Made by a program: the position numbers and the translations under genes. 64,000 nt of DNA from the IMG/VR virus record IMGVR_UViG_3300044568_003163, positions 62,001-126,000 of that record; one strand, 5' to 3'. The notes under the pieces are model-generated. The model was not told where the DNA came from, did not search any database, and was given only the letters and a program-made list of their open reading frames with translations. Shown in pieces: positions 1,509 through 62,183 of this stretch; position 1 is the stretch's first letter; the number at the start of each line of letters is the position of its first letter.

Positions 1509-1534
1509 AAAAGCTCAATCTTACGATTAAGCTT
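1509..1534 (-). terminator. intrinsic terminator ending the tRNA array
   Basis: AAAGCTTAATC-GTAA-GATTGAGCTTTT hairpin with U tail on the minus strand. Confidence 0.7.
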
Positions 1535-1592
1535 TATCGAAGGTATATTAGGCCATACCAATAACCAGGACCTTTTCCCTAGGGAAATGTCG

Positions 1593-1675
1593 TGACCAAA
1601 GAGGGACTCGAACCCTCACGCTCAAAGAGCACCAGCTTCTTAGACTGGCGTGTCTACCAATTCCACCACTCGGCC
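1593..1675 (-). tRNA. tRNA-Leu(AAG)
   Basis: Cloverleaf with long variable arm; loop CT-AAG-AA. Confidence 0.85.
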
Positions 1676-1677
1676 GT

Positions 1678-1802
1678 AATGAGCAATCCTATGGAATTAC
1701 TGCAGTTTATCCAAAGGTCGTATATAGCTTGCAGACTAAGATTCTGCTGGATTTTCACCTTCATAAAGCTGGATATCAACGACCCTTATCGCGATTCTCA
1801 TT
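1678..1802 (-). ncRNA. candidate structured ncRNA
   Basis: Nested stems AATGAG/CTCATT, GGTCGT/ACGACC, AGCTT/AAGCT, GCAGA/TCTGC. Confidence 0.5.
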
Positions 1803-1803
1803 G

Positions 1804-1877
1804 TACCCGAGATGGGACTCGAACCCACACTGTACAGGGTTTAAGTCTGATGCCTCTTCCAATTGGGCTACCCGGGC
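1804..1877 (-). tRNA. tRNA-Leu(TAA), short variable loop
   Basis: Cloverleaf; loop CT-TAA-AC; weak anticodon stem. Confidence 0.7.
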
Positions 1878-1880
1878 AAA

Positions 1881-2003
1881 TTAAAGAAGTAAGAAAATGA
1901 ACTCCTTAACAGCTGAACGTTCAATAACTTTAAGAATCATTTTGCTTGTATCTCTAGGATTTGCAACTCCTATAAATTCACAAAATGCTTTTTGTTTATT
2001 CAT
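1881..2003 (-). CDS. 40-aa small ORF
   Basis: MNKQKAFCEFIGVANPRDTSKMILKVIERSAVKEFIFLLL. Confidence 0.4.
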   Translation of the reverse strand: MNKQKAFCEFIGVANPRDTSKMILKVIERSAVKEFIFLLL

Positions 2004-2044
2004 TATTGTTCATTTCAATTTTGTTATTGCATTATTAGGAATAA

Positions 2045-2116
2045 CGATACTATAGGACTCGAACCTATACCTTCCAGCTCGCTCGCCGGAATTCTACCAA
2101 ATTAAACTAAATACCA
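2045..2116 (-). ncRNA. tRNA-like element with non-canonical anticodon loop
   Basis: D arm and T arm (ATAGGTTCGAGTCCTAT) present; 6-nt loop GAGCGA lacks U33. Confidence 0.5.
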
Positions 2117-2153
2117 ACCTTTTTATCTCAATAACAAAAGATGTCCTTCTTTG

Positions 2154-2226
2154 TACCTAAGGAGGGATTCGAACCCACACTGTCATGCTCCTAAGGCATG
2201 TGCCTCTTCCGTTGGGCTACTTAGGC
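2154..2226 (-). tRNA. tRNA-Leu(TAG), short variable loop
   Basis: CATGC-CTTAGGA-GCATG. Confidence 0.85.
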
Positions 2227-2231
2227 AAATT

Positions 2232-2307
2232 GGTAAGTGATGGCCTACTTGTTACCATCTGTCTCTGTTTAGTTGCAACCACTAATCCTGAATGTAGAGA
2301 ACTTACC
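2232..2307 (-). ncRNA. candidate structured ncRNA
   Basis: Closing stem GGTAAGT/ACTTACC with internal hairpins. Confidence 0.4.
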
Positions 2308-2434
2308 TTTTGTTTTATGTTAGCTAATAAACATTGTTTCTAATGTTATTAACATCATCTTTTTAATTTTTGTACATTATAATATACATTAAGCCACAAT
2401 ATGACGTGTTTTGTATATTATAGTGTACATTTTG

Positions 2435-2507
2435 AGCTGACAATCAGGATCGAACTGATGACCTCTTCGATACCAACGAAGTGTTCTTCCAACTGAACTA
2501 TGTCTGC
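2435..2507 (-). tRNA. tRNA-Thr(GGT)
   Basis: CTTCG-TTGGTAT-CGAAG. Confidence 0.85.
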
Positions 2508-2515
2508 ATATTACA

Positions 2516-2612
2516 GGGTTGTTAATTACCTCTTTCGAGGATTTCGGAGTTGAACCGATAGACAAAATTTCAAGTTTCGTGTTTAACCAATAGTTGTTTG
2601 CTGAAACAACCC
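2516..2612 (-). ncRNA. tRNA-core-like RNA without acceptor stem
   Basis: GGGTTGTT/AACAACCC closure around D-like, anticodon-like (CTTGAAA) and T-like arms. Confidence 0.5.
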
Positions 2613-2617
2613 TTTTG

Positions 2618-2691
2618 AGCTGACAGTCAGGATCGAACTGACTCTGTTCCGGGTTACAAATCCGGTGCACCACCATTCATGCGTTGCCAGC
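2618..2691 (-). tRNA. tRNA-Thr(TGT)
   Basis: Loop TT-TGT-AA; cloverleaf. Confidence 0.85.
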
Positions 2692-2701
2692 ATATGTTTC
2701 G

Positions 2702-2772
2702 TTGGGATACTAGGTTTCGAACCTAGGCGGACTGGCTCAAAACCAGTAATGCTACCGTTACATCATATCCCA
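2702..2772 (-). tRNA. tRNA-Gln(TTG)
   Basis: ACTGG-TTTTGAG-CCAGT. Confidence 0.85.
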
Positions 2773-2778
2773 ATGTAG

Positions 2779-2849
2779 TTATCCGAGGTGGATTCGAACC
2801 ACCAATGACTGCACCAAAAACAGTAGTGTTACCGTTACACTATCGGACA
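2779..2849 (-). tRNA. tRNA-Gln(TTG)
   Basis: ACTGT-TTTTGGT-GCAGT. Confidence 0.85.
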
Positions 2850-2850
2850 G

Positions 2851-2924
2851 TGACCATAATAGGATTCGAACCTATAACCGCTGGTTTAGAAAACCAGTGC
2901 TCTATCCAATTGAGCTATATGGCC
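2851..2924 (-). tRNA. tRNA-Arg(TCT)
   Basis: CTGGT-TTTCTAA-ACCAG. Confidence 0.9.
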
Positions 2925-2995
2925 AATTAAGTTCTCCAACCCTGGAACTTATACATATCATCATTAAGCGGTCACATAGAATGTGAGATATGTTG

Positions 2996-3081
2996 AAGAG
3001 AAGATGGGACTCGAACCCACAAACCGAATTAACGGTTAACGGATTAGCAATCCGCTGCAGTACCATTATGCTTACTTCTCT
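2996..3081 (-). tRNA. tRNA-Ser(GCT)
   Basis: GCGGA-TTGCTAA-TCCGT; long variable arm. Confidence 0.9.
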
Positions 3082-3086
3082 ATAAA

Positions 3087-3187
3087 AAGTTAAAGGCAGA
3101 ATTCCAAATCTGCATTTTTATTCTAAAACGAGAATAACGTGAGTTTTATCGATACGTCTATCGAGGCAATTATCACTACTTTAACTT
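3087..3187 (-). ncRNA. candidate multibranch ncRNA
   Basis: AAGTTAAAG/CTTTAACTT closure with three internal hairpins. Confidence 0.45.
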
Positions 3188-3189
3188 AA

Positions 3190-3279
3190 TGGAGGAGAGA
3201 GTGGGATTCGAACCCACGGAACGCTTTCACGCTCAATAGTTTTCAAGACTATCCTAATCAACCTCTCTAGCACCTCTCC
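3190..3279 (-). tRNA. tRNA-Ser(TGA)
   Basis: ATAGT-CTTGAAA-ACTAT; long variable arm; CCA encoded. Confidence 0.9.
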
Positions 3280-3285
3280 ATTATT

Positions 3286-3363
3286 TGGGGTGGAAGACGG
3301 GACTCGAACCCGCGATCTCTAGAACCACAATCTAGCGCTTTAACCAACTAAGCTACAACCACC
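3286..3363 (-). tRNA. tRNA-His(GTG)
   Basis: CTAGA-TTGTGGT-TCTAG; G-1; CCA encoded. Confidence 0.9.
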
Positions 3364-3374
3364 ATGTATAAAAC

Positions 3375-3409
3375 AAAAAAGCTCGATTCATTTGATAGAA
3401 CCGAGCTTT
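3375..3409 (-). terminator. attenuator terminator 1
   Basis: AAAGCTCGGTTC...GAATCGAGCTTTTTT just upstream of tRNA-His. Confidence 0.85.
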
Positions 3410-3443
3410 GCAATTTAGTATTTATATTTTCACATAAGAACCA

Positions 3444-3518
3444 TCACACTTCGGTACTGTTTTCAGATCTTGTTAGATGCTGAAGCGACGTTAACGATAA
3501 TGTACTTGAAGTTCTCAT
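3444..3518 (-). CDS. putative attenuator leader peptide 1 (MRTSSTLSLTSLQHLTRSENSTEV)
   Basis: Lies between promoter and terminator; codons 2-18 are only R/T/S/L/Q/H. Confidence 0.75.
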   Translation of the reverse strand: MRTSSTLSLTSLQHLTRSENSTEV

Positions 3519-3550
3519 TGTTTGTAATTTATTATTTTTTATATATACTG

Positions 3551-3578
3551 TTATATGTCTAAAATTGCTGAGAGTTTC
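3551..3578 (-). promoter_or_regulatory. class II promoter GAAAC-N16-CATATAA
   Basis: Same motif and spacer recur at 6140, 9470, 44907 and 56117. Confidence 0.7.
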
Positions 3579-3603
3579 AAAAAACTTTCAATTTATTTTC
3601 TAG

Positions 3604-3700
3604 TGAAGACAATTGGGATCGAACCAATGGCACGCCTATGTTCCTTATCGATCATACCAATAAGTACTGAAGGTTGCTCTACCAACTGAGCTATATCTTC
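3604..3700 (-). ncRNA. tRNA-like RNA with expanded anticodon domain
   Basis: Intact acceptor, D and T arms; no 7-nt anticodon loop. Confidence 0.65.
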
Positions 3701-3705
3701 ATTTG

Positions 3706-3776
3706 TAGCGGATTAAGGACTCGAACCTCGCCATTGGGTTATGAGCCCGATATGCTACCAATTACACTAAACCGCA
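3706..3776 (-). tRNA. tRNA-Met(CAT), initiator-like, divergent
   Basis: GGG-CTCATAA-CCC; 1:72 mismatch. Confidence 0.65.
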
Positions 3777-3917
3777 AGATGACCTTAAGGATTCGAACCT
3801 TTAACTTGTTTCCTCTTTTAGTTTTGCAAACCTACTCAATTCTACCGTGCCCAATACACTATTGCCAATCGTCATTTTCGAACATGACAGCCTTAAGTTA
3901 ATTACTCTTAAGATTTG

Positions 3918-3989
3918 TAGTCCCACCGGGAATCGAACCCGACTTTTCAGGATGAAAACCTGATGACCTAACCGATAGTCGATAGGACC
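3918..3989 (-). tRNA. tRNA-Glu(TTC)
   Basis: TCAGG-TTTTCAT-CCTGA. Confidence 0.9.
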
Positions 3990-4077
3990 AATTAAGTTAT
4001 ATCAAATTCTCCCGCAGAGATACCGACCCATTGCTGAGCCAGAGAGGACTTGAACCTCTGATTCTCAATAACTAATT
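3990..4077 (-). ncRNA. circularly permuted tRNA-like RNA (YrlA-type topology)
   Basis: Order is stem, T arm, GCAA-capped acceptor-like stem, TA, D-like arm, stem. Confidence 0.55.
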
Positions 4078-4173
4078 TAAAAGAATTAAAGAGTAGAGCT
4101 CTTCAACGATTTCGGCATTTCAGCTGGATCTTTATGCCAACTTCCTAATCCTTAGTCCGTTTAATTCTTGTAG

Positions 4174-4247
4174 TATTATGTACGGGACTCGAACCCGTGT
4201 TATCAACGTGAAAGGCTGACGTCCTAGACCAACTAGACGAACATAAC
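4174..4247 (-). tRNA. tRNA-Glu(TTC)
   Basis: TCAGC-CTTTCAC-GTTGA. Confidence 0.85.
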
Positions 4248-4251
4248 ATTT

Positions 4252-4464
4252 TTAAGCTTCTTCAGAGACAAGTCCTAAAACTTCTTCTCTGTAAATTTTA
4301 TTCAATTCACTTACTTCAATATCGATATTCGTTTGTGGATATCGGTGAAGTAAAATCTTAACTAATCTGATTCGTTTCTCAGCCAAATCTTGATTAAAGT
4401 CCATTTCAATCATTGCATCACTTAAATGAGATTGAATTGCGATTGATAATTTGATAGTTTCCAT
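4252..4464 (-). CDS. hypothetical protein
   Basis: ORF directly after a class I promoter. Confidence 0.65.
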   Translation of the reverse strand: METIKLSIAIQSHLSDAMIEMDFNQDLAEKRIRLVKILLHRYPQTNIDIEVSELNKIYREEVLGLVSEEA

Positions 4465-4488
4465 AATGTGATTGTTTAATTTTAATAA

Positions 4489-4546
4489 GTAAAACTAATC
4501 AATTTAATTGACATATGGAAATTATTTTTCAAAAAGTTATTAACAA
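4489..4546 (-). promoter_or_regulatory. class I promoter cassette
   Basis: Box at 4536; offset 46. Confidence 0.65.
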
Positions 4547-4558
4547 TTTTAAAATAAA

Positions 4559-4732
4559 AAGTTTGTCACCGGCACAGATTGGTGAATACCCAAGTACAAC
4601 CGAATGTACCCGATACCTTACTAACAAAATGAACGGATCTGTGTTTCCTGTATGCGGCAAGTGACCTCCTTCCTTGCTTGTGTTTCCGTATCGATGTGTG
4701 CGGCAACATACCATTTTGAGTTCAACAAACTT
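4559..4732 (-). ncRNA. candidate ~175-nt structured ncRNA
   Basis: AAGTTTGT/ACAAACTT closing stem; GC-richer than flanks; follows tRNA-fMet. Confidence 0.4.
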
Positions 4733-4736
4733 CTTG

Positions 4737-4809
4737 TAGCGGGAGCAGGACTCGAACCTGCGACCTTTGGGTTATGAGCCCACTGAGCTACCAACTGCTC
4801 TATCCCGCA
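4737..4809 (-). tRNA. tRNA-fMet(CAT)
   Basis: GGG-CTCATAA-CCC; unpaired 1:72. Confidence 0.85.
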
Positions 4810-4835
4810 ATATACCTTTTAAGTAGAACCATCAA

Positions 4836-5027
4836 CTATATTTCTGTTGATGATTCTAATTGTCTTAATTTTAAACCTTCTTCAATTGTTTGAATGATGT
4901 CCTCAATTATTTGAGCTCGCGTAACATCAAAGTTACCATTCATTCCATTCAAATCTTTTGCATCAATTGCAATAGATCCTACTGACTTACCGTCTTTCTG
5001 TAATTCAATTACTAATGTATCAAACAT
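4836..5027 (-). CDS. hypothetical protein
   Basis: ORF track; class II-like promoter at 5050-5077. Confidence 0.6.
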   Translation of the reverse strand: MFDTLVIELQKDGKSVGSIAIDAKDLNGMNGNFDVTRAQIIEDIIQTIEEGLKLRQLESSTEI

Positions 5028-5092
5028 AATATAGCTTTTTATTTAATTGTTTTATGCAATTTGAAATAAATTGTTTCTCTTCTTATTAACAT

Positions 5093-5551
5093 CTATCTAC
5101 AGATTCTATCAGCTACATATGAAGCCGAGCATGCATCTGGTTTACATCTAGCGTTATAACCTAATGATTCTACATAACCTAAAGCAGAACGCAGAATTGA
5201 ATTAGATTGATACTTAGGGTCTGGATTAAAATCCAAATCAATAAATGCAGGTTTTTCAATATCATTAGCTTCAAGCCATTGAGCTAATTCAACTGAATCT
5301 TCTACCTCTTTCCAAAGTCTAGTAAATCTATCTAAGATTCTAGGAATTGATTTACGAGAGTAGATAACGTGACCTCCTCGATTACCGTAATGTAAAACAA
5401 TAACCATTGCGTAAATTGTATTTCTTCCAATATTTTGCGAATCTGAACCGATATACATTTTGATGTCTTTACCAGTTGCGAGTTTGTCCTTTAAATAAGG
5501 AATTAAGTCAATTACTTGACCGTTTGTTAACGATTGAAATTTCCGGTCCAT
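5093..5551 (-). CDS. RNase H-like protein, YkuK/DUF458 family
   Basis: IGSDSQ, RLWKEVEDS, IDLDFN and ADR motifs. Confidence 0.8.
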   Translation of the reverse strand: MDRKFQSLTNGQVIDLIPYLKDKLATGKDIKMYIGSDSQNIGRNTIYAMVIVLHYGNRGGHVIYSRKSIPRILDRFTRLWKEVEDSVELAQWLEANDIEKPAFIDLDFNPDPKYQSNSILRSALGYVESLGYNARCKPDACSASYVADRICR

Positions 5552-5571
5552 GATTATTAAATTTATGTTAG

Positions 5572-5642
5572 AGGCGAGTATAGGATTCGAACCTATGTAA
5601 CTGATTTTGCAGACCAGCGCCTAACCGCTCGGCCAACTCGCC
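5572..5642 (-). tRNA. tRNA-Cys(GCA)
   Basis: CTGGT-CTGCAAA-ATCAG; U73. Confidence 0.9.
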
Positions 5643-5647
5643 ATTTG

Positions 5648-5719
5648 TGACTCTAGAGAGACTCGAACTCCCATCTCCTGATCCGTAGTCAAGTGTTCTA
5701 TCCATTGAACTATAGAGCC
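5648..5719 (-). tRNA. tRNA-Arg(ACG)
   Basis: CTTGA-CTACGGA-TCAGG. Confidence 0.9.
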
Positions 5720-5728
5720 ATTATTTTG

Positions 5729-5801
5729 TCGGGAAGACAGGACTCGAACCTGCGGCCTCATGCTCCCAAAGCACGCGATCTACCAACTGATCTACTTCCC
5801 G
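5729..5801 (-). tRNA. tRNA-Pro(TGG)
   Basis: CGTGC-TTTGGGA-GCATG. Confidence 0.9.
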
Positions 5802-5848
5802 TGGCAGAGAGGCTTTTGAAGTGCCCTGCTAGTTCATCTTTTAATTTG

Positions 5849-5922
5849 TCGAATAGACAGGAATCGAACCTGCTAACTGATACGTCCAAGGTACCCGTGC
5901 TTAAAACCTTAGTCACTACTCG
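5849..5922 (-). tRNA. tRNA-Pro(TGG), divergent
   Basis: GGTAC-CTTGGAC-GTATC; atypical D arm. Confidence 0.7.
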
Positions 5923-5931
5923 TTTAAAAAC

Positions 5932-5967
5932 AAAAAAGCCTGAATCGGTTGAATGATTCAGGCTTTT
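5932..5967 (-). terminator. attenuator terminator 2
   Basis: AAAAGCCTGAATC...GATTCAGGCTTTTTT just upstream of tRNA-Pro. Confidence 0.85.
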
Positions 5968-5988
5968 ATATGATGATGTTACTTTATA

Positions 5989-6084
5989 TCATTCAAAAAC
6001 CTGCATACCATTCTCACATGCCTCAGGACGAGGGCATTCTACTGTTAACTGCGATGTTGTTAGTATGTGTGAAAGTATTAACAT
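5989..6084 (-). CDS. putative attenuator leader peptide 2 (MLILSHILTTSQLTVECPRPEACENGMQVFE)
   Basis: Lies between promoter and terminator; E-C-P-R-P-E-A-C-E core. Confidence 0.7.
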   Translation of the reverse strand: MLILSHILTTSQLTVECPRPEACENGMQVFE

Positions 6085-6139
6085 TTTAATTTTTATTAGC
6101 AAAGACTCTTTATCTTTGTTTAGTTCTTTTATATATCTT

Positions 6140-6167
6140 TTATATGTTCCGTTATTGCGGAAGTTTC
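6140..6167 (-). promoter_or_regulatory. class II promoter GAAAC-N16-CATATAA
   Basis: Exact motif. Confidence 0.7.
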
Positions 6168-6316
6168 AAAATTATTTTATTCTTTTCTATTTGTGCTTTA
6201 ATCTTAGCAATCTTTTCTGGACTAGGATTTCTATCTATCGTATACGAAACACCCATCTTGTCCATGTAATCGTAAAGAAGTTGCATATCTTCATTAGTAG
6301 TTTTAGTTGTTTTCAT
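6152..6316 (-). CDS. 54-aa hypothetical protein (not in ORF track)
   Basis: MKTTKTTNEDMQLLYDYMDKMGVSYTIDRNPSPEKIAKIK... Confidence 0.55.
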   Translation of the reverse strand: MKTTKTTNEDMQLLYDYMDKMGVSYTIDRNPSPEKIAKIKAQIEKNKIILKLPQ

Positions 6317-6328
6317 AATAACTATTTG

Positions 6329-6402
6329 AGCGGATATTCGGATTCGAACCGAAACTTCAGACTTGGAAGGCCCACGTGCTAGCCGTTAAACACCATACCC
6401 GC
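6329..6402 (-). tRNA. tRNA-Gly(TCC)
   Basis: TGGGC-CTTCCAA-GTCTG. Confidence 0.85.
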
Positions 6403-6412
6403 ATTTTGTTTG

Positions 6413-6485
6413 AGCAATAAATCAGATTCGAACTGACGACCTCTACCTTGGCAAGGTAATGCTCTACCAACTGAGCTATTATTGC
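6413..6485 (-). tRNA. tRNA-Gly(GCC)
   Basis: TTACC-TTGCCAA-GGTAG. Confidence 0.9.
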
Positions 6486-6552
6486 ATTTGAAGGACTTGC
6501 ACCTTCTGGACATGGTTTGTTTCGCCTAAGTCGCCATGTCAACAGACCCGAG

Positions 6553-6624
6553 AGGGCAGAGTGAGATTCGAACTCACGACCAGTTGATTAACAGTCAACT
6601 GCTCTACCGCTGAGCTATCCACCC
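6553..6624 (-). tRNA. tRNA-Asn(GTT)
   Basis: GTTGA-CTGTTAA-TCAAC. Confidence 0.9.
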
Positions 6625-6630
6625 TTATTG

Positions 6631-6741
6631 CAGGAATGTAAGGAATCGAACCTTAGCATCTTCCGAGACAGGGAGTAATTTATGCAGAATACAATCTTCG
6701 CAGATTGAGTTTTAAGCGTGCTACCATTACACCACATTCCT
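6631..6741 (-). ncRNA. tRNA-like RNA with ~60-nt replacement of the anticodon domain
   Basis: Perfect acceptor, D and T arms; internal CAATCT-GCGA-AGATTG hairpin. Confidence 0.7.
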
Positions 6742-6749
6742 GTATTTTG

Positions 6750-6866
6750 TGGGCTCATATGGGCTCGAACCATAATCTCTTCCTAATGACATCCTACCAT
6801 ACTAAAAAGGAATCGAACCTTAGACTCATTATCGAGAAAGCGCTTTGCCAATTAAGCTAATCGCCC
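6750..6866 (-). ncRNA. tRNA-like RNA with a second T-loop/D-loop inside the anticodon domain
   Basis: TAATGA/TCATTA stem encloses AAGGTTCGATTCCTT and AGTATGGTAG. Confidence 0.65.
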
Positions 6867-6872
6867 ATGTAG

Positions 6873-7004
6873 TGAAGAATCCTAGACTCGAACTAGGAAT
6901 GTCAATTAAGACGCCGGTTTTACATCCTTTAAATTGCTGAATAAACACTTTGCACAGTGTTTGCCTTTTTGGACCGGAGCGTTTACCAATTCCGCCAATT
7001 CTTC
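6873..7004 (-). ncRNA. class II tRNA body with ~54-nt anticodon loop
   Basis: CCGGT/ACCGG stem encloses a long loop ending TGTAAA; variable arm present. Confidence 0.7.
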
Positions 7005-7011
7005 ATTATTG

Positions 7012-7083
7012 TTCTCCCGCTGGGAGTCGAACCCAGCCTCATAGATTAAAAGTCTATTGCCCACACCAGTCTGCTACGAGAGA
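7012..7083 (-). tRNA. tRNA-Lys(TTT)
   Basis: ATAGA-CTTTTAA-TCTAT. Confidence 0.85.
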
Positions 7084-7169
7084 TTGTAAAGTTTTCTATT
7101 GCCAACCTCTCAACAGTGTAGAGTATTGACCTATCTATGTTTTCGCTTCATGTTCATTATATTATTTAG

Positions 7170-7243
7170 TGGCCAAGCCTGGACTCGAACCAGGGACCTT
7201 CGCATTATGAGTGCGCCGCTCTAACCAACTGAGCTACATGGCC
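7170..7243 (-). tRNA. tRNA(CAT), probably Ile2 (lysidine type)
   Basis: Loop CTCATAA; GGCC acceptor resembles Ile2 tRNAs. Confidence 0.75.
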
Positions 7244-7359
7244 AAAAATGTAGGGTTATCCGGTACCTACACTGATTAATGACAATCAGACCATCGTTCA
7301 CCACCTGTAAGAGCCTAACGATAGATACTGTACTTGCTTACACTCAAGTATCCGCTGGG

Positions 7360-7433
7360 TAGCGAGGACCGGGATCGAACCGGCGACCTTTGGTTTATGA
7401 ATCCAATGTTACTACCAACTGAACTACCTCGCC
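7360..7433 (-). tRNA. tRNA-Met(CAT), elongator
   Basis: Loop TTCATAA; GGCG acceptor. Confidence 0.8.
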
Positions 7434-7472
7434 AAATTGTAAGTTTTGAATGGACTTACAACCATTGATAGA

Positions 7473-7703
7473 TTATTGGTGATGAGGAATATACTTTCCG
7501 TTCTTAACTCTAACTGCCAGTTTGGTCACGTTAAAATTCCAACAATCAAATGTACTTAATGCAGATCTTTGTTTTGCAAGACTAATGGCTTGCTTTTCTG
7601 CTTTTTCTCGACCTTCTTCCGTTGTTTCGACGAAAAAAGTGGGAGCCTGAACACCAGTCTTACTGGTAGGAACTACTCTCCAAATTCTCAAATTAGTAAT
7701 CAT
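7473..7703 (-). CDS. hypothetical protein
   Basis: ORF track. Confidence 0.6.
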   Translation of the reverse strand: MITNLRIWRVVPTSKTGVQAPTFFVETTEEGREKAEKQAISLAKQRSALSTFDCWNFNVTKLAVRVKNGKYIPHHQ

Positions 7704-7783
7704 AAGTTTTAGCTAAGCTAGACCTATGAGGAATTGTACGATTTTGTTGACATTTGATTTATATTTTTTTATTATATGTTCGA

Positions 7784-8230
7784 TTAAGCCAGAGATTCAA
7801 TAACCTCTTTTACTAATTTTGTATCGGCAAGACCTGGAAATTTCTTAACGAAAGCACCCATAGTCATACCTATTAATTTTTGTTTGTTTAATTCTAAAAC
7901 AGAACCGAGTAAAACATTAACTTCAGTTTCAATTTCAGCTCTAGTCATTTGCTTTGGCAAGTACTTTTCAATAACACCTAATTCATTAGCTTCAGATTCC
8001 ACTAAATCGAATCGACCAGCTTTTGTAAATTCTTCAATAGATTGTCTACGTTGTTTGATTGTAGAAATTACTGCATTTAGAACTAACTCATCAGTAAGTG
8101 GACCAGCATGCTTTGCCTTTTCAGCATCTTGGATTTTTGCCTTTAATCCACTTAATGCATTCTTCGCAATCGCGTTTTTCTCTTTGAATGCTACTATATA
8201 GTCAGCATTGATTGTTTCTCTTAAATTCAT
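7784..8230 (-). CDS. GatB/YqeY domain protein
   Basis: KQRRQSIEEF..AGRFDL..E..E..VIEKYLPKQM signature. Confidence 0.9.
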   Translation of the reverse strand: MNLRETINADYIVAFKEKNAIAKNALSGLKAKIQDAEKAKHAGPLTDELVLNAVISTIKQRRQSIEEFTKAGRFDLVESEANELGVIEKYLPKQMTRAEIETEVNVLLGSVLELNKQKLIGMTMGAFVKKFPGLADTKLVKEVIESLA

Positions 8231-8246
8231 CTTTACTAATTTTTAG

Positions 8247-8327
8247 TGGGCAACAGTGGACTCGAACCACTCCCGTGAGGACCAGATTTACAGTCTGGCT
8301 GCCGTATCCGAACGACTTTTGCGGCCC
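8247..8327 (-). tRNA. tRNA-Tyr(GTA)
   Basis: CCAGA-CTGTAAA-TCTGG; variable arm; atypical D arm. Confidence 0.8.
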
Positions 8328-8336
8328 ATTATATTG

Positions 8337-8410
8337 TGACTCCTCTGGGACTCGAACCCAGGACTCCCTCATTAAAAGTGAGGTGCTCTAGCCGACTGAG
8401 CTAAGAAGTC
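8337..8410 (-). tRNA. tRNA-Lys(TTT)
   Basis: CCTCA-CTTTTAA-TGAGG. Confidence 0.9.
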
Positions 8411-8420
8411 ATTGTAATAG

Positions 8421-8494
8421 CAGTCCTAACGGAATTCGAATCCGCAATCTCTTCCGTGACAGGGAAGCGTCATACGCCAATATGCTGTAGGACT
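8421..8494 (-). tRNA. tRNA-Asp(GTC)
   Basis: CTTCC-CTGTCAC-GGAAG. Confidence 0.8.
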
Positions 8495-8581
8495 ATATAA
8501 AAATTATTTAGTTTAAGCTCCTTTAAACCATGTAATTTCAGGGAGCTATTTGAGCTTATGCATGGAACTAAATAATAATTG

Positions 8582-8655
8582 CCGAGATGACGGGACTCGA
8601 ACCCGTGACCTTCGCCGTGACAGGGCGACATTGTAACCAACTCTACTACACCTCG
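8582..8655 (-). tRNA. tRNA-Asp(GTC)
   Basis: TCGCC-CTGTCAC-GGCGA. Confidence 0.85.
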
Positions 8656-8714
8656 ATTTCTAATTTCACGCTCACACTATGCAGTTCTATAAATTAGTAA
8701 CAGTCTCATCTGGG

Positions 8715-8788
8715 CTCTCCTGACTGGATTCGAACCAGTAACCCTCACCTTAACAGGGTGTCGCTCTAACCGTTGGAGCTACAGGAGA
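8715..8788 (-). tRNA. tRNA-Asn(GTT)
   Basis: CACC-CTGTTAA-GGTG. Confidence 0.85.
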
Positions 8789-8811
8789 ATATTTGATGTT
8801 TTAATTATAAG

Positions 8812-8869
8812 ACAAATATAAACAATGTCATTGACATATGAAAATATTTAATCAAATAGTTATTAACAA
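8812..8869 (-). promoter_or_regulatory. class I promoter cassette inside the tRNA array
   Basis: TATATTTG at 8813-8820, box at 8859; offset 46. Confidence 0.75.
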
Positions 8870-8873
8870 TTTG

Positions 8874-8945
8874 TGGAGCTACCGGGATTCGAACCCGGAA
8901 TAACAGAGTGCAAGTCTATCGTGATGCCAATTTCACTATAGCCCC
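8874..8945 (-). tRNA. tRNA-Ala(TGC)
   Basis: GGGGCTA acceptor with G3:U70; loop CTTGCAC. Confidence 0.9.
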
Positions 8946-8955
8946 ATTAAATTTG

Positions 8956-9030
8956 TAGGAGATGACGGAATCGAACCGACGACCTTTTGCGTGTAAAACA
9001 AACGCTCTAAACCAACTGAGCTAATCTCCT
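8956..9030 (-). tRNA. tRNA-Val(TAC)
   Basis: TTTGT-TTTACAC-GCAAA. Confidence 0.9.
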
Positions 9031-9036
9031 AAATTG

Positions 9037-9110
9037 TAGGTAATATGAGACTCGAACTCATAACCTCCTCGGTATCAGCGAGGTGCTCTAACCAATTGAG
9101 CTAACTACCT
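9037..9110 (-). tRNA. tRNA-Ile(GAT)
   Basis: CCTCG-CTGATAC-CGAGG. Confidence 0.9.
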
Positions 9111-9117
9111 GTGGCAG

Positions 9118-9188
9118 CACGAATGGAAGGATTCGAACCTTCATCGACGGTTTTGGAGACCGGCATGCTACCATTGCACCACACTCGT
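9118..9188 (-). tRNA. tRNA-Trp(CCA)
   Basis: CGGT-CTCCAAA-ACCG. Confidence 0.9.
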
Positions 9189-9195
9189 ATTTTAG

Positions 9196-9268
9196 TGGTA
9201 AGGGACGGGATCGAACCGTCATCATCGGATTTTCAGTCCGCTGCATAGACCAACTTTGCTACCTCACC
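9196..9268 (-). tRNA. tRNA-Phe(GAA)
   Basis: CGGA-CTGAAAA-TCCG. Confidence 0.9.
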
Positions 9269-9274
9269 AAAAAC

Positions 9275-9308
9275 AAAAAACCTCTGAATTTTTGAAGATT
9301 CAGAGGTT
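9275..9308 (-). terminator. attenuator terminator 3
   Basis: AACCTCTGAAT...ATTCAGAGGTTTTTT just upstream of tRNA-Phe. Confidence 0.85.
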
Positions 9309-9335
9309 AAAGTATATTGTATTAAAATATCGATA

Positions 9336-9434
9336 CTACATCCGAATCACATTGCTATCCACATAATCATTCCCGGCAAACTTAATCGCCCAGTCAAAAT
9401 TCATGTTAATATTTATGTTAGTAGTAGGTATCAT
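9336..9434 (-). CDS. putative attenuator leader peptide 3 (MIPTTNININMNFDWAIKFAGNDYVDSNVIRM)
   Basis: Lies between promoter and terminator; composition matches the downstream tRNA block. Confidence 0.75.
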   Translation of the reverse strand: MIPTTNININMNFDWAIKFAGNDYVDSNVIRM

Positions 9435-9469
9435 TTTATTGATGTTTTAATATTGTTTTATATATACTG

Positions 9470-9497
9470 TTATATGTTCTAAATTTCAAAAAGTTTC
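9470..9497 (-). promoter_or_regulatory. class II promoter GAAAC-N16-CATATAA
   Basis: Exact motif. Confidence 0.7.
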
Positions 9498-9526
9498 AAC
9501 TTATTTTTATATTATTTTAATCTTAG

Positions 9527-10104: not shown

Positions 10105-11421
10105 TTAACCTTCAGCTTCTTCGGTATCAATTACTCCAGAATCTTTTACGATTCCTTCAAGTACTTTGAATTCGAAAGACTTGAATTTGAATGTTTTGTT
10201 TACCAAACCACCTTCAATTCTTACACAAACTCCTTCTTTGATATGTCTAGTATCTAAGATAGATGGACCAGTTCCGAATGTTTCGACGGTGTTGCTGAAA
10301 TATTCTCGCAAATCTCTATCATCGAATTTATGAGTGATTGCTTCTAATTCGTTTAAGGTTATCGTAGCAACATGTGGTACAGTTTTTACACCTAATTCAT
10401 TACAACGTTTTACAACATCATTCCAAGCATAATCGATAGATTGACCATCTTCATTAGCAAATGTCATACGGTAAACATAAACCTCAGATTGAGTAGGTTC
10501 ACAACCATAAGAATAAGCCATAGACTTACCGTATTGTTTCGTAAACTCTTTATCACCCATTTTGGTTGTATCAACAGATGGCATAATTGCAGCTCCTGTA
10601 GATTCGTAACCTACAATTTCAAAATAAACGGTTTCACCTTTTCTTAAGTTACCTTTGAATAAGTTCATTGCTTTATCTCGGATGGTTGGGTCATGGAATT
10701 GATTTGCGGATTTTGATTCTCCTAAAACAACTCTACGAGTACCATTCAAATAAGCCCATTCTTTGTCGTTGATAGCTAATCCAAATTTAGTAACAAGTTT
10801 TTCTAACCAACCTAATTCTCTAGTCATTTGAACGTGACCAATACGACCTGAAGTACCGTGAAGTTTTTCAGTAATAATGATGTGTTGACCCTTTTCAAAT
10901 TCGTGGATACTCTTACCAAAGTGTCCGGTATCAAAATGTTCTTTGAACATTACAGAAGATCTAGAAACTCGGGTTTTCTTACCTTGATTTTCTCTAGCAA
11001 TTTTAGCCGTATTTGGATTTACATATTTGTTACAGATAGGTACACCTTTCCATTCGTCAAATTCAAATCCTTCTACATCTAAACCAGTTACCATAATGAA
11101 TCCAAAGTAATGTAATGGAACCCAGAAACCATCAGAGATTTCACCTCTAAATTTTTGAGCTCTTACTCTTCGGTTTGCATCGAACATTCCACCTTTCTCA
11201 TCTTTTCTAGCATTTAACTCGGCATCACGATAAAGGTTGTTTGCTTTACAGAACTCATCGGATAACTGACCATCAGATGGAAAGTAAACTCCTAAATGTC
11301 CTTCTAAAGAATCTAAACCAATTACTACTTGATTACCGTGACAAGTTGCTAATTGAACTTTGTCTGCGTTAGGATGTGGTCTCACGTTTGTCAACCTAGT
11401 GACGATTGCATTGTATGCCAT
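10105..11421 (-). CDS. RNA ligase (DRB0094/Rnl2-like with N-terminal OB-like domain)
   Basis: HPNADK, TEKLHGTS adenylation motif, EGVCVR, FKFKS. Confidence 0.85.
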   Translation of the reverse strand: MAYNAIVTRLTNVRPHPNADKVQLATCHGNQVVIGLDSLEGHLGVYFPSDGQLSDEFCKANNLYRDAELNARKDEKGGMFDANRRVRAQKFRGEISDGFWVPLHYFGFIMVTGLDVEGFEFDEWKGVPICNKYVNPNTAKIARENQGKKTRVSRSSVMFKEHFDTGHFGKSIHEFEKGQHIIITEKLHGTSGRIGHVQMTRELGWLEKLVTKFGLAINDKEWAYLNGTRRVVLGESKSANQFHDPTIRDKAMNLFKGNLRKGETVYFEIVGYESTGAAIMPSVDTTKMGDKEFTKQYGKSMAYSYGCEPTQSEVYVYRMTFANEDGQSIDYAWNDVVKRCNELGVKTVPHVATITLNELEAITHKFDDRDLREYFSNTVETFGTGPSILDTRHIKEGVCVRIEGGLVNKTFKFKSFEFKVLEGIVKDSGVIDTEEAEG

Positions 11422-11634: not shown

Positions 11635-11985
11635 TCATGATTGTGTAGATTTAATGTACACAATTATTCCAATGATTGAAAGAAAGCACAATGCTAATAC
11701 TGTTATTGCAGGTAAATAATCTTCTTTCTCTCTCCAAATTTTGTAATTATATCGAGGTTCGTTCTGCTTCCACGAATGGTCTTCAGACTTCTCAGACTTA
11801 ACATATTTTTTGTTTAGTTTTTTTAGGGATTTCCTAATTTCCTTTTTACATGGTTCAGCACCACAACAATAAAAAAATGATATATCTGTTTCGCTTATCA
11901 GCTTAGTAGTAGCTTCTTCCTCGCAACAATAACAATAATTTGGTTTCATATTAATACTCTTTAATGAGTACGGTACCATCTCCAT
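11635..11985 (-). CDS. Cys-rich protein with C-terminal TM
   Basis: CxCC and CCxxxxC motifs, hydrophobic tail; true start probably near 11949. Confidence 0.55.
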   Translation of the reverse strand: MEMVPYSLKSINMKPNYCYCCEEEATTKLISETDISFFYCCGAEPCKKEIRKSLKKLNKKYVKSEKSEDHSWKQNEPRYNYKIWREKEDYLPAITVLALCFLSIIGIIVYIKSTQS

Positions 11986-12817
11986 GCTCTAAACAGTCAA
12001 CGCAAAAGATAGTGTCTTTTACTTCTGGCCATCTACCAGCAGTCGGTTCAGTATCGTATTCAGTTACTTTGTGATGGGGTGTATGTCCGATTACTTGGTC
12101 ATAACCTTCTAATGCATCCCATCTTAATCTTCTCGGTCTAATCCAAACAGGACCTGCAAATTCTGAATATCCACCAGAATCTCCATCTACGTTAAATAAA
12201 ATATTTAAACGATATTGCCAAGCTTTATTGATAATCTCATCCGGCCTAAGATTCCAATCTCCTTCAAAATCTGCTTTGAATCGGAAACCGTCTCTTTTAA
12301 CCGTTGCATGCAATTGGCGTAACCAACCATGAGTTACTCCAGCATGAGTCCATAAAGTTCGCTTTAACCTACCATCGATTTCTCTTTCATGATAATATGC
12401 GAAAGTAAATTTGTCGATGTTTTTAGTAAACAACTCTTGAAAATCAAATTTCATTTCAGGTCGATAACCTGAACAGATTTGATCGGCTACAATATATTGA
12501 ATATCGTGATTTCCTAAAAGCAAGACTATTTTGTCTGGATATTCGGTTTTTAAATGTATGATTTCCTCTAGATTTAATTTCATCTCTAGGTTTTGTACAT
12601 CAAATGAATCTACGTAATCTCCAACGAAAACGATTTTATCCATTTCGTTAAAAATAGGATAGGTGTCTTCAAACGCTTCTTTTGCTCCGTTATCTACTTC
12701 CTGTCTCCAGCTATTATAGTCCGTTAGAGAGCCGAATAACACAGTCTTCCAGGTATTTCTTCCGTGGATATCTCCGATAGACATGATTTTCATTGTAGTT
12801 TTCATTTTATGGTTCAT
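11951..12817 (-). CDS. calcineurin-like metallophosphoesterase
   Basis: GDIHG, GDYVD, GNHD, THAG and GHT motifs. Confidence 0.9.
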   Translation of the reverse strand: MNHKMKTTMKIMSIGDIHGRNTWKTVLFGSLTDYNSWRQEVDNGAKEAFEDTYPIFNEMDKIVFVGDYVDSFDVQNLEMKLNLEEIIHLKTEYPDKIVLLLGNHDIQYIVADQICSGYRPEMKFDFQELFTKNIDKFTFAYYHEREIDGRLKRTLWTHAGVTHGWLRQLHATVKRDGFRFKADFEGDWNLRPDEIINKAWQYRLNILFNVDGDSGGYSEFAGPVWIRPRRLRWDALEGYDQVIGHTPHHKVTEYDTEPTAGRWPEVKDTIFCVDCLEHGDGTVLIKEY

Positions 12818-30050: not shown

Positions 30051-30107
30051 ACAAATATAACAAAAAAACTCGATACTTGGAAATATCGAGTCGAAAGTTA
30101 TTAACAA
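30051..30107 (-). promoter_or_regulatory. class I promoter cassette with embedded hairpin
   Basis: Box at 30097; offset 45. Confidence 0.75.
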
Positions 30108-61973: not shown

Positions 61974-62183
61974 TTATTTCTTGTTAGCGGGTTCGAATGT
62001 TGACGTATACCAATTTTTGTCGTATAAACCTTTTGGCCATTCTTTTGATTCGATTACAACACCTTGAAATTCTTTACTCGAGTAGTTGCAGGTAGTTTCA
62101 GTACACATAATTATAGTGTTACCTGATTTGTTTGTGTATAATTCTCCTTTTAGGAAAACTTTTCTTTCTATAAAATCTTCCAT
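61974..62183 (-). CDS. hypothetical protein
   Basis: ORF track. Confidence 0.55.
   Translation of the reverse strand: MEDFIERKVFLKGELYTNKSGNTIIMCTETTCNYSSKEFQGVVIESKEWPKGLYDKNWYTSTFEPANKK

Follow-up and report, generated by a model that had tools for sequence, protein, structure and literature searches.

Predicted leader-peptide attenuators in front of three tRNA gene blocks of an uncultured freshwater phage

Little is known about the regulation of transfer RNA (tRNA) arrays in phage genomes, which are usually seen as constitutive supplements to codon usage and, lately, as substitutes for tRNAs that host defences destroy. When the tRNAs of a phage are made is a question raised by a 64,000-nt stretch of DNA, here called the window (positions 62,001 to 126,000 of IMG/VR record IMGVR_UViG_3300044568_003163), which lies on a 129-kb contig obtained from a lake metagenome and stems from an uncultured freshwater phage. 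In the window, a large tRNA array is divided by three similar cassettes, each consisting of a promoter-like element, a short open reading frame (ORF), and a terminator-like hairpin directly in front of the first tRNA gene of a block. Judged from sequence comparisons, each cassette is, with a probability of about two in three, a ribosome-mediated (leader-peptide) transcription attenuator that would gate the tRNA block behind it.

Three cassettes divide the tRNA array

The array is located between positions 1592 and 9268, and all array and cassette features of the window given below are on the minus strand. ARAGORN predicted 35 tRNA genes; Rfam and a relaxed ARAGORN search added a tRNA-Thr(TGT) at 2618-2691 that had been missed earlier, resulting in an array of 36 tRNAs, and two tRNA-like genes with insertions. 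Block 1 (1592..3362) contains tRNAs for His, Ser(TGA), Ser(GCT), Arg(TCT), Gln, Gln, Thr(TGT), Thr(GGT), Leu(TAG), a tRNA with an odd loop, Leu(TAA), and Leu(AAG). Block 2 (3604..5922) specifies Pro, Pro, Arg(ACG), Cys, Met, Glu, Glu, and Met along with an odd tRNA-like gene at 3604-3700, and block 3 (6328..9268) Phe, Trp, Ile, Val, Ala, Asn, Asp, Asp, Lys, Tyr, Met, Met, Lys (odd tRNA-like gene at 6631-6741), Asn, Gly, and Gly. Jointly, the three blocks cover all 20 amino acids. A first-pass annotation of the window had listed the same blocks, to which the tRNA-Thr(TGT) is an addition. After the last tRNA, the array is closed by a terminator-like hairpin at 1510..1535.

The same annotation had described the three cassettes, and all of them were located as claimed, with an upstream element, an ATG ORF of 24-32 codons, a hairpin followed by a run of U residues, and a tRNA gene at a distance of 11-16 nt. 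The sequence TTGAAA-N16-18-CATATAA is found in exactly three copies in the 64 kb, while 0.06 are expected from shuffled sequences, and all three copies read TTGAAAC-N16-CATATAA. They are located at 9470..9499 in cassette 3, at 6140..6169 in cassette 2, where the element overlaps the end of a 54-aa ORF (6152-6316), and at 3551..3580 in cassette 1. The spacing is of the sigma-70 type, and the element of cassette 3 is conserved in the related loci L003, L141, L148, L005, and L329, which are introduced below. What stands of the earlier designation as a promoter is a conserved motif resembling a consensus; by its sequence the element is promoter-like, and promoter function is a prediction. Degenerate copies of it (GAAAC-N16-CATAAAA, two to three mismatches) are present at 5050-5079 in block 2 and at 2313-2342 in block 1, both lacking a leader ORF and a terminator. 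These may act as weak promoters within the blocks or be vestiges of cassettes since lost.

Downstream of the element, 40-60 A/T-rich bases precede a single ATG ORF in each cassette. Leader ORF 3 (9336..9434) specifies 32 aa, MIPTTNININMNFDWAIKFAGNDYVDSNVIRM, and has homologues in L141, L148, L005, L149, and L329. Leader ORF 2 (5989..6084) encodes 31 aa from its ATG, MLILSHILTTSQLTVECPRPEACENGMQVFE, or 37 aa if started at an upstream TTG, and leader ORF 1 (3444..3518) 24 aa, MRTSSTLSLTSLQHLTRSENSTEV. None of the leaders is preceded by a Shine-Dalgarno sequence, which is also absent from 61 of the 64 long ORFs in the window. A spacer of 21-34 nt separates the ORFs from the hairpins. The terminators have G+C-containing stems of 11-13 bp with predicted energies of -13.7 to -17.1 kcal/mol and T6GT4-5 tails, features from which efficient termination would be expected. 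Terminator 3 (9279..9308) consists of an 11-bp stem with an 8-nt loop followed by TTTTTTGTTTTT, terminator 2 (5934..5967) of a 12-13 bp stem with the same tail, and terminator 1 (3378..3409) of a 12-bp stem followed by TTTTTTGTTTT. The first tRNA genes begin 11-16 nt past these stems, tRNA-Phe at 9268, tRNA-Pro at 5922, and tRNA-His at 3362. No other strong terminators were detected inside the array. When the three cassettes are aligned with each other, the upstream elements and the terminators match, and the stems differ by compensatory changes.

Genes resembling tRNAs, but with insertions of 8-46 nt in or near the anticodon arm, were observed at 3604-3700 and 6631-6741 of the window and at 6519-6650 (plus strand) of L005. 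The two in the window reach 44-46 bits, above the Rfam threshold for tRNAs. ARAGORN calls the insertion-bearing genes in intron mode only, and their identities are doubtful (Thr, Gln, Tyr). Possible explanations are tRNAs with introns, decoys, or pseudogenes.

Leader codons and the tRNAs behind them

If the cassettes were attenuators, the codons of a leader should be indicative of the tRNAs under its control. Compared with amino acid frequencies in 44 long ORFs of the window, leader 1 is strongly biased: 19 of its 23 residues belong to the set specified by block 1, His/Ser/Arg/Gln/Thr/Leu (expected fraction 0.30; P=3e-7), and the four non-cognate residues are all found within the last six codons. 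The leader samples all ten distinct anticodons of the block (P~1e-3, with independently drawn codons or with windows from real ORFs). Three Leu codon types are present for the three Leu tRNAs, and both Ser boxes and both Thr tRNAs are represented. All members of block 1 but one have an obvious codon in leader 1. The exception is the odd tRNA at 2044-2116, which has an anticodon loop of 8 nt and a four-base 'anticodon', AGCG (tentatively called Ala or Arg by ARAGORN).

For leader 3, 26 of 31 residues were from the 11-amino-acid set of its block (P=3e-3), and 11 of 12 block anticodons are sampled. Leader 2 is different. While all five anticodons of block 2 are sampled, ten of 30 residues are cognate (P=0.02), or 12 of 30 at the codon level (P=2e-3), and the cognate residues cluster in the central part, ECPRPEACE..M. 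The earlier claim that each leader matches its own block thus applies to leaders 1 and 3, but in leader 2 to the centre only, the first half being of the block-1 type. Leader 2 may descend from a leader resembling leader B of L005 that once served an undivided block.

Taken together, the leaders sample 76 of 77 block anticodons, and the complete coverages of 10/10, 12/12, and 21/21 each have a P value of ~1e-3. The correspondence is specific to the reading frame. In eight leaders, cognate triplets account for 164 of 254 in the ATG frame, versus 98/246 and 82/246 in the other two frames, which contain stop codons. It is also specific to the block: among the six possible assignments of the leaders to the blocks of the window, the real one scored best, with a summed z of 11.8 versus 3.0 for the next best. 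When leader-block pairings were permuted among eight informative cassettes, the true pairing won again (P=1e-4), in a test made conservative by the presence of homologous leaders. The permutation of codon content against own and other blocks, proposed along with the first-pass annotation, therefore gave a significant, frame-specific result. Cognate residues are less frequent in the last five codons (21/40) than elsewhere (154/214; P=0.024). The codons at this end, where non-cognate residues gather, are constrained by base pairing and useless for sensing.

Alternative RNA structures and related arrays

Attenuation by a leader peptide requires two mutually exclusive structures. In folds of the full-length cassettes the terminator is formed. 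In folds ending before its 3' arm, the 5' arm of the terminator pairs with the end of the ORF and the stop codon region, designated region 2 here, in nearly every cassette, the exception being L175. Both alternatives are thus predicted to form as had been proposed. The strength of the second pairing was evaluated by comparing duplexes between the terminator 5' arm and 41 nt around the stop codon with those obtained from shuffled segments. In eight of nine leader families, the best duplex was superior to the shuffled ones (P 0.002-0.044; 0.002 in L329), and combining the eight families by Fisher's method yielded 6e-8. In cassette 3, region 2 (9337..9349; GATTCGGATG and stop) is complementary to the terminator 5' arm with a duplex energy of -11.3 kcal/mol (P=0.044). 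In cassette 2, GAATGGTATGCAGGTTTTT (5995..6014) is complementary to the 5' arm AAAGCCTGAATCATTC with -14.5 kcal/mol (P=0.002). Both regions also pair in the shortened folds. Complementarity between ORF end and terminator had been claimed for all three cassettes; it was confirmed for these two but not for cassette 1, in which the candidate region 2 (3447..3459; GTACCGAAG) forms a weak duplex of -8.2 kcal/mol and pairs with the terminator arm only within a longer structure of the shortened fold. In all cassettes, region 2 is within reach of a ribosome positioned at the stop codon.

Conservation of these structures could be followed in related phages. A megablast search with the array against 50,697 phage genomes produced matches merely of tRNA size, so that there is no close cultured relative at the DNA level. 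The gene directly upstream of the array encodes an RNA ligase (10105-11421, minus strand; PF09414 and the OB domain PF21189). A tblastn search with this ligase revealed homologues of at most 46% identity in unrelated phages. Relatives from lakes were found in IMG/VR and JGI metagenomes when the ligase was used as an anchor; they are designated by L and a number. A short ATG leader ORF is also present in nine related cassettes. Between terminator 3 and its counterpart in cassette A of L005, four base pairs are exchanged by compensatory changes, and antiterminator pairing is retained in the same comparison by A-T to G-C as well as G-T, A-T, and G-C changes. The antiterminator of L141 shows a change of G-T to A-T. 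In L329, the sequence of region 2, GTTATGCCCGCTTT, almost repeats that of the terminator 3' arm.

The composition of the leaders follows the tRNA content of the relatives. L003 and L141, with ligase identities of 91-96%, harbor near-identical cassettes. In L005 (ligase identity 71%), two cassettes are present. Leader A, MKTSNVNIANIIMVENFGWAKAFAKGNDYDYELHTFGS, precedes tRNAs for Phe, Ala, Gly, Ile, Glu, Asp, Tyr, Met, Lys, Val, Glu, Met, Met, and Asn, and leader B, MLTITNIQRTSLHTSSPISQRCSLPLCSPSIDS, those for Gln, Ser, Ser, Cys, His, Pro, Arg, Thr, Thr, Leu, Met, Leu, and Arg. Leader B has 26 cognate residues out of 32 (P=3e-7) and covers 12 of 12 anticodons. In comparison to the window, tRNAs for Cys and Pro have been relocated to the 'Ser/Thr/Leu' block of L005, and its leader B contains two Cys and three Pro residues, both absent from leader 1 of the window. 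Likewise, the Glu tRNAs have moved to the 'Phe' block A, and leader A has gained two Glu residues. In L169, L172, and L175, a mini-block of Phe, Val, Trp, and Ile is located behind the F/V/I/W-rich leader MKQNIHNIIINTANSFAFVAIWFAVITS, ending FAFVAIWFAVITS (L169: 12 of 27 residues cognate, P=2.5e-3), and in L165 tRNAs for Phe and Trp only follow a leader ending in FAFVAIWFAWVTS. At the other extreme, L158, L162, L334, and L337 contain a single block of about 21 tRNAs behind a leader of 48 codons. In L162, this leader includes all 20 amino acids and samples 21 of 21 anticodons (P ~0.005 with independent codons, 0.0006 with real ORF windows). Further leaders of the type of leader 3 were detected in L148 and L329. 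Recurrence of the cassette, tracking of tRNA content by the leaders, and compensatory base changes were thus all found in the arrays of relatives, a comparison that had been suggested along with the first-pass annotation.

Other features of the related loci should be mentioned. In L003 (4386-9436; 91%-related), leaders 3 and 1 are the same as in the window, cassette 2 is absent, and about 16 tRNAs are present. The array lacks those for Val, Ala, Asn, Asp, Lys, Tyr, Gly, Pro, Arg(ACG), and Cys, which shows rapid tRNA loss without adjustment of the leaders. A non-tRNA element of about 200 nt is conserved between tRNA-Phe and tRNA-Trp in L165 (1186-1390) and between tRNA-Val and tRNA-Trp in L169 (5725-6000). 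It contains the complementary stretches TTGATTGG...CCAATCA and AAAGGGG...CCCCTTT, has no match in Rfam, and may be an unknown structured RNA. More distant relatives, identified via the YqeY gene or the ligase (L137-L139, L174/L180, L014), possess arrays without the cassette, even under a relaxed search for terminators. Scans of IMG/VR for exact patterns of the promoter motif or of conserved leader DNA yielded mostly single matches expected by chance.

Proposed mechanism, alternatives, and known systems

From these features, the following mode of action can be proposed. Transcription would begin at or upstream of the GAAAC...CATATAA element, and the leader ORF would be translated while RNA polymerase approaches the terminator. 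If all sampled codons are decoded fast, the ribosome would reach the stop codon and mask region 2, the terminator would form, and the tRNA genes would not be transcribed. If any of the sampled codons is slow, owing to scarcity of the charged tRNA, the ribosome would lag behind, region 2 would pair with the 5' arm of the terminator, and polymerase would enter the tRNA block. The newly made tRNAs would restore decoding and shut the gate again, constituting a negative feedback with an OR-gate over 5-21 anticodons.

Several observations weigh against this interpretation. In leader 2, about 40% of the codons are cognate and the first 14 are of the block-1 type, and most codons occur once or twice per leader, unlike the runs in the leaders of his, phe, and thr operons. 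The antiterminator of cassette 1 was no better than shuffled sequences (P=0.41). Pairing of region 2 with early ORF codons, a candidate anti-antiterminator (1:2 pairing), is seen in full-length minimum free energy folds of L005_A, L165, L169, L172, and L175, and is not clear in cassette 3 of the window. Among the relatives, L003 has an identical leader 3 though its block lost the tRNAs for Val, Ala, Asn, Asp, Lys, Tyr, and Gly, leader A of L005 contains a Trp codon and the L162 leader Lys codons for which no matching tRNA was found in the block, and L329 exhibits no enrichment at the codon level (14 of 30 versus an expected fraction of 0.48). In L155 and L336, an insert of about 310 nt separates the terminator from the tRNAs. 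The cassette is confined to one clade and is absent from distant relatives and from T5. Finally, the gates could be bypassed from promoter-like sites inside the array, one at 8804-8831, where the first-pass annotation had also noted it, and the less well conserved GAAAC copies at 5050-5079 and 2313-2342. Nor can the blocks be regarded as entirely independent of each other, because transcription reading through one cassette continues into the next.

The insert in L155 (2641-2950) and L336 (6207-6305) carries a promoter-like sequence containing TTGACA and may represent a natural bypass of the attenuator.

It had also been proposed that only the block that is lacking would be switched on. This idea is weakened by the mixed composition of leader 2 and by read-through from upstream entering the next cassette. 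Attenuation as such passed all in-silico tests suggested beforehand.

A different explanation would be that the cassettes are autonomous mini transcription units producing a small RNA or containing an incidental ORF. Transcription of the tRNAs would then start at different promoters or result from constitutive leak-through, with the terminators as mere boundaries and the codon match without regulatory meaning. Any tiny gene would indeed consist of a promoter, an ORF, and a terminator, promoter-like sites are present inside the array, leader and block correspond poorly in L003 and L329, and small, stable RNAs with no known function are annotated between the tRNAs of T5. On the other hand, neither the frame-specific codon-block match and its co-variation in relatives nor the conserved complementarity between ORF end and terminator arm, with its compensatory changes, would be explained. 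Furthermore, the cassettes have no match in Rfam, and ordinary unit boundaries in this phage are organized the opposite way. At these boundaries, a minus-strand hairpin (e.g. CTCGATATTTCCA.GTATCGAG) is followed by a T run and TATATTTGTCTTATAAAT 15-25 nt before gene starts. Such junctions were detected at 30059, 27067, 24682, 22510, 18962, 16351, 16047, 11454, 46556, and 8820, and probably represent the standard terminator-promoter module of the phage, the order of which is reversed in the cassettes (element, ORF, terminator, gene). Mini transcription units are therefore considered unlikely. The junction at 8820, which precedes tRNA-Asn inside block 3, could allow transcription to circumvent attenuator 3.

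The cassettes might also respond to translation in general. Any global slowdown, caused by phage shut-off, starvation, or a defence targeting ribosomes, would open all gates, and the block-specific codons would allow the phage tRNAs to close them. The many codon types with few repeats per leader, the mixture of block-1 and block-2 codons in leader 2, and the induction of a tRNA operon in Anabaena by general translational stress (PMC10272220) point in this direction. Such a timing switch does not by itself explain the clean partition of amino acids between leaders in genomes with several blocks, and it looks the same in sequence data as the attenuator model, of which it is a variant, not a separate alternative. 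As the sole explanation it appears quite improbable.

The small ORFs could specify functional micropeptides, membrane-bound or regulatory, whose composition resembles that of the blocks since phage tRNAs mirror codon usage. Some leaders are in fact hydrophobic (FAFVAIWFAVITS). A search with the peptide of the L162 type detected close relatives only, with 79-96% identity in nine database clusters, and the peptide is called as a gene in some assemblies. Against this possibility, controls drawn from real phage ORFs failed to reproduce the match, which also distinguishes between the blocks of a single genome. In comparisons of close homologues, the three codon positions contribute evenly to the variable sites (9/9/10), and 16 of 20 variable codons alter the amino acid, while the reading frames stay open. 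With no third-position bias, changing amino acids, and an open frame, the peptide is not the product under selection; this fits codons, not the peptide, being what matters in a leader. No Pfam or PHROG family was matched by the leader peptides, and those of five or six leader families share no sequence beyond the core of the leader 3 type. Micropeptides are thus a very unlikely explanation.

Least probable of all is direct sensing similar to that of T-boxes, with leader triplets pairing to anticodons of uncharged tRNAs and stabilizing the antiterminator without ribosomes: triplets complementary to block anticodons and a terminator/antiterminator switch are there, but cognate enrichment is restricted to the frame set by the ATG and closed by the stop codon, some 100 nt of RNA would need to accommodate 10-20 different tRNAs, the cassettes contain neither a specifier loop nor a T-box sequence, and Rfam detected only tRNAs in the window array (E<=0.1) and in six related loci (gathering threshold), with no T-box (RF00230).

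Upstream of the tRNA array, the ligase gene is accompanied by a gene for a calcineurin-like phosphoesterase (metallophosphoesterase; 11951-12817, minus strand). The pair resembles tRNA-repair modules, which suggests that the phage meets tRNA damage. Within the array, ORFs are found in block 2, one RNaseH-like (5093-5551) and others of 63 and 70 aa, and in block 3, one YqeY-like (7784-8230) and another of 76 aa. The long ORFs of the window are all encoded by the minus strand, and the 61 without a Shine-Dalgarno sequence have A/T-rich upstream regions. These properties are reminiscent of phages infecting Bacteroidota. A promoter of the Bacteroidota type (TAnnTTTG) was considered for the cassettes and rejected, as this motif is not consistently present there.

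Trigger candidates for the attenuators could be the codon demand of the phage, decay of host tRNAs, cleavage by defence nucleases, or amino acid starvation. The first-pass annotation had favoured host anticodon nucleases, a choice supported by none of the present evidence. Counter-defence is plausible by analogy, considering the flanking genes resembling RNA repair functions and the precedent of T5, T1, and T7, in which phage tRNAs are used against tRNA-cleaving defences including retron Eco7 (PMC11555353). Demand-driven autoregulation or a response to amino acid starvation would rely on the same circuit. In a more far-reaching version, which must be regarded as tentative and rather doubtful, the leader would act as a 'test message' sampling every anticodon of its block. 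Loss of any tRNA, by PrrC, a retron effector, PARIS AriB, or host turnover, would open the block within seconds, resulting in an inducible and self-limiting counter-defence. It would also be the first example of decoding speed directly determining the transcription of tRNAs.

If attenuation operates as proposed, decoding speed and tRNA supply would be connected in a direct loop, a logic undescribed for any tRNA gene, cellular or viral, and multivalent attenuation would be widened from two to three amino acids to as many as 20. The design of about 150 nt would be portable to reporters and PURE systems and could provide synthetic biology with a natural 'codon-availability sensor'. Its signature, a short ORF, a terminator, a tRNA within 30 nt, and a codon-block match, can be searched in arrays of phages and plasmids, and such searches would address when and why accessory tRNAs are deployed.

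Multivalent attenuators are known from enterobacteria, with thrL responding to Thr and Ile and ilvL to Ile, Leu, and Val, besides trpL, hisL, pheL, and leuL. As in these systems, a short ORF is located between promoter-like element and intrinsic terminator, its codons would report the supply of charged tRNAs, the antiterminator overlaps the end of the ORF and the terminator 5' arm, and a ribosome at the stop codon would favour termination. In contrast to them, the targets are tRNA genes and a few small ORFs, not biosynthetic enzymes, 5-21 anticodons are sampled mostly once or twice instead of by runs for one to three amino acids, and the cassettes are encoded by a phage, lack Shine-Dalgarno sequences, and partition one array in up to three copies. 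Since described members of this class regulate genes for amino acid biosynthesis or aminoacyl-tRNA synthetases, the cassettes would not be ordinary members. The pheST attenuator of E. coli with its pheM leader is similar in that a component of the translation apparatus is controlled through a leader peptide by its own cognate charged tRNA. Its target, however, is an aminoacyl-tRNA synthetase and its leader is rich in Phe only, while here the product would be the tRNA, closing a direct feedback loop. T-box riboswitches also control translation-related genes and let tRNA status decide between terminator and antiterminator, but they bind uncharged tRNA via a specifier codon and the T-box sequence, whereas the signal described here is frame-specific and bounded by ATG and stop codon.

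Among tRNA arrays, the trn operon of Anabaena PCC 7120 is comparable, an accessory array of about 26 tRNA genes that is kept off and induced under translational stress (PMC10272220). It is cellular and relies on a repressor protein, TrcR, without codon-resolved sensing. Phage T5 possesses a large tRNA array with small ORFs and a YqeY-like gene as well, and phage tRNAs there replace host tRNAs destroyed by defences (PMC11555353), but the T5 promoters are strong and constitutive. Inspection of the T5 tRNA region revealed promoters and small ORFs for ordinary-looking small proteins, but neither a terminator before tRNAs nor a cassette of ORF, terminator, and tRNA. In a full-text literature search, no description of leader-peptide control was found for phage or cellular tRNA genes. 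By their sequence features, the cassettes would thus belong to a known mechanistic class, the leader-peptide attenuators, in which both their target and the highly multivalent design of their leaders would be new.

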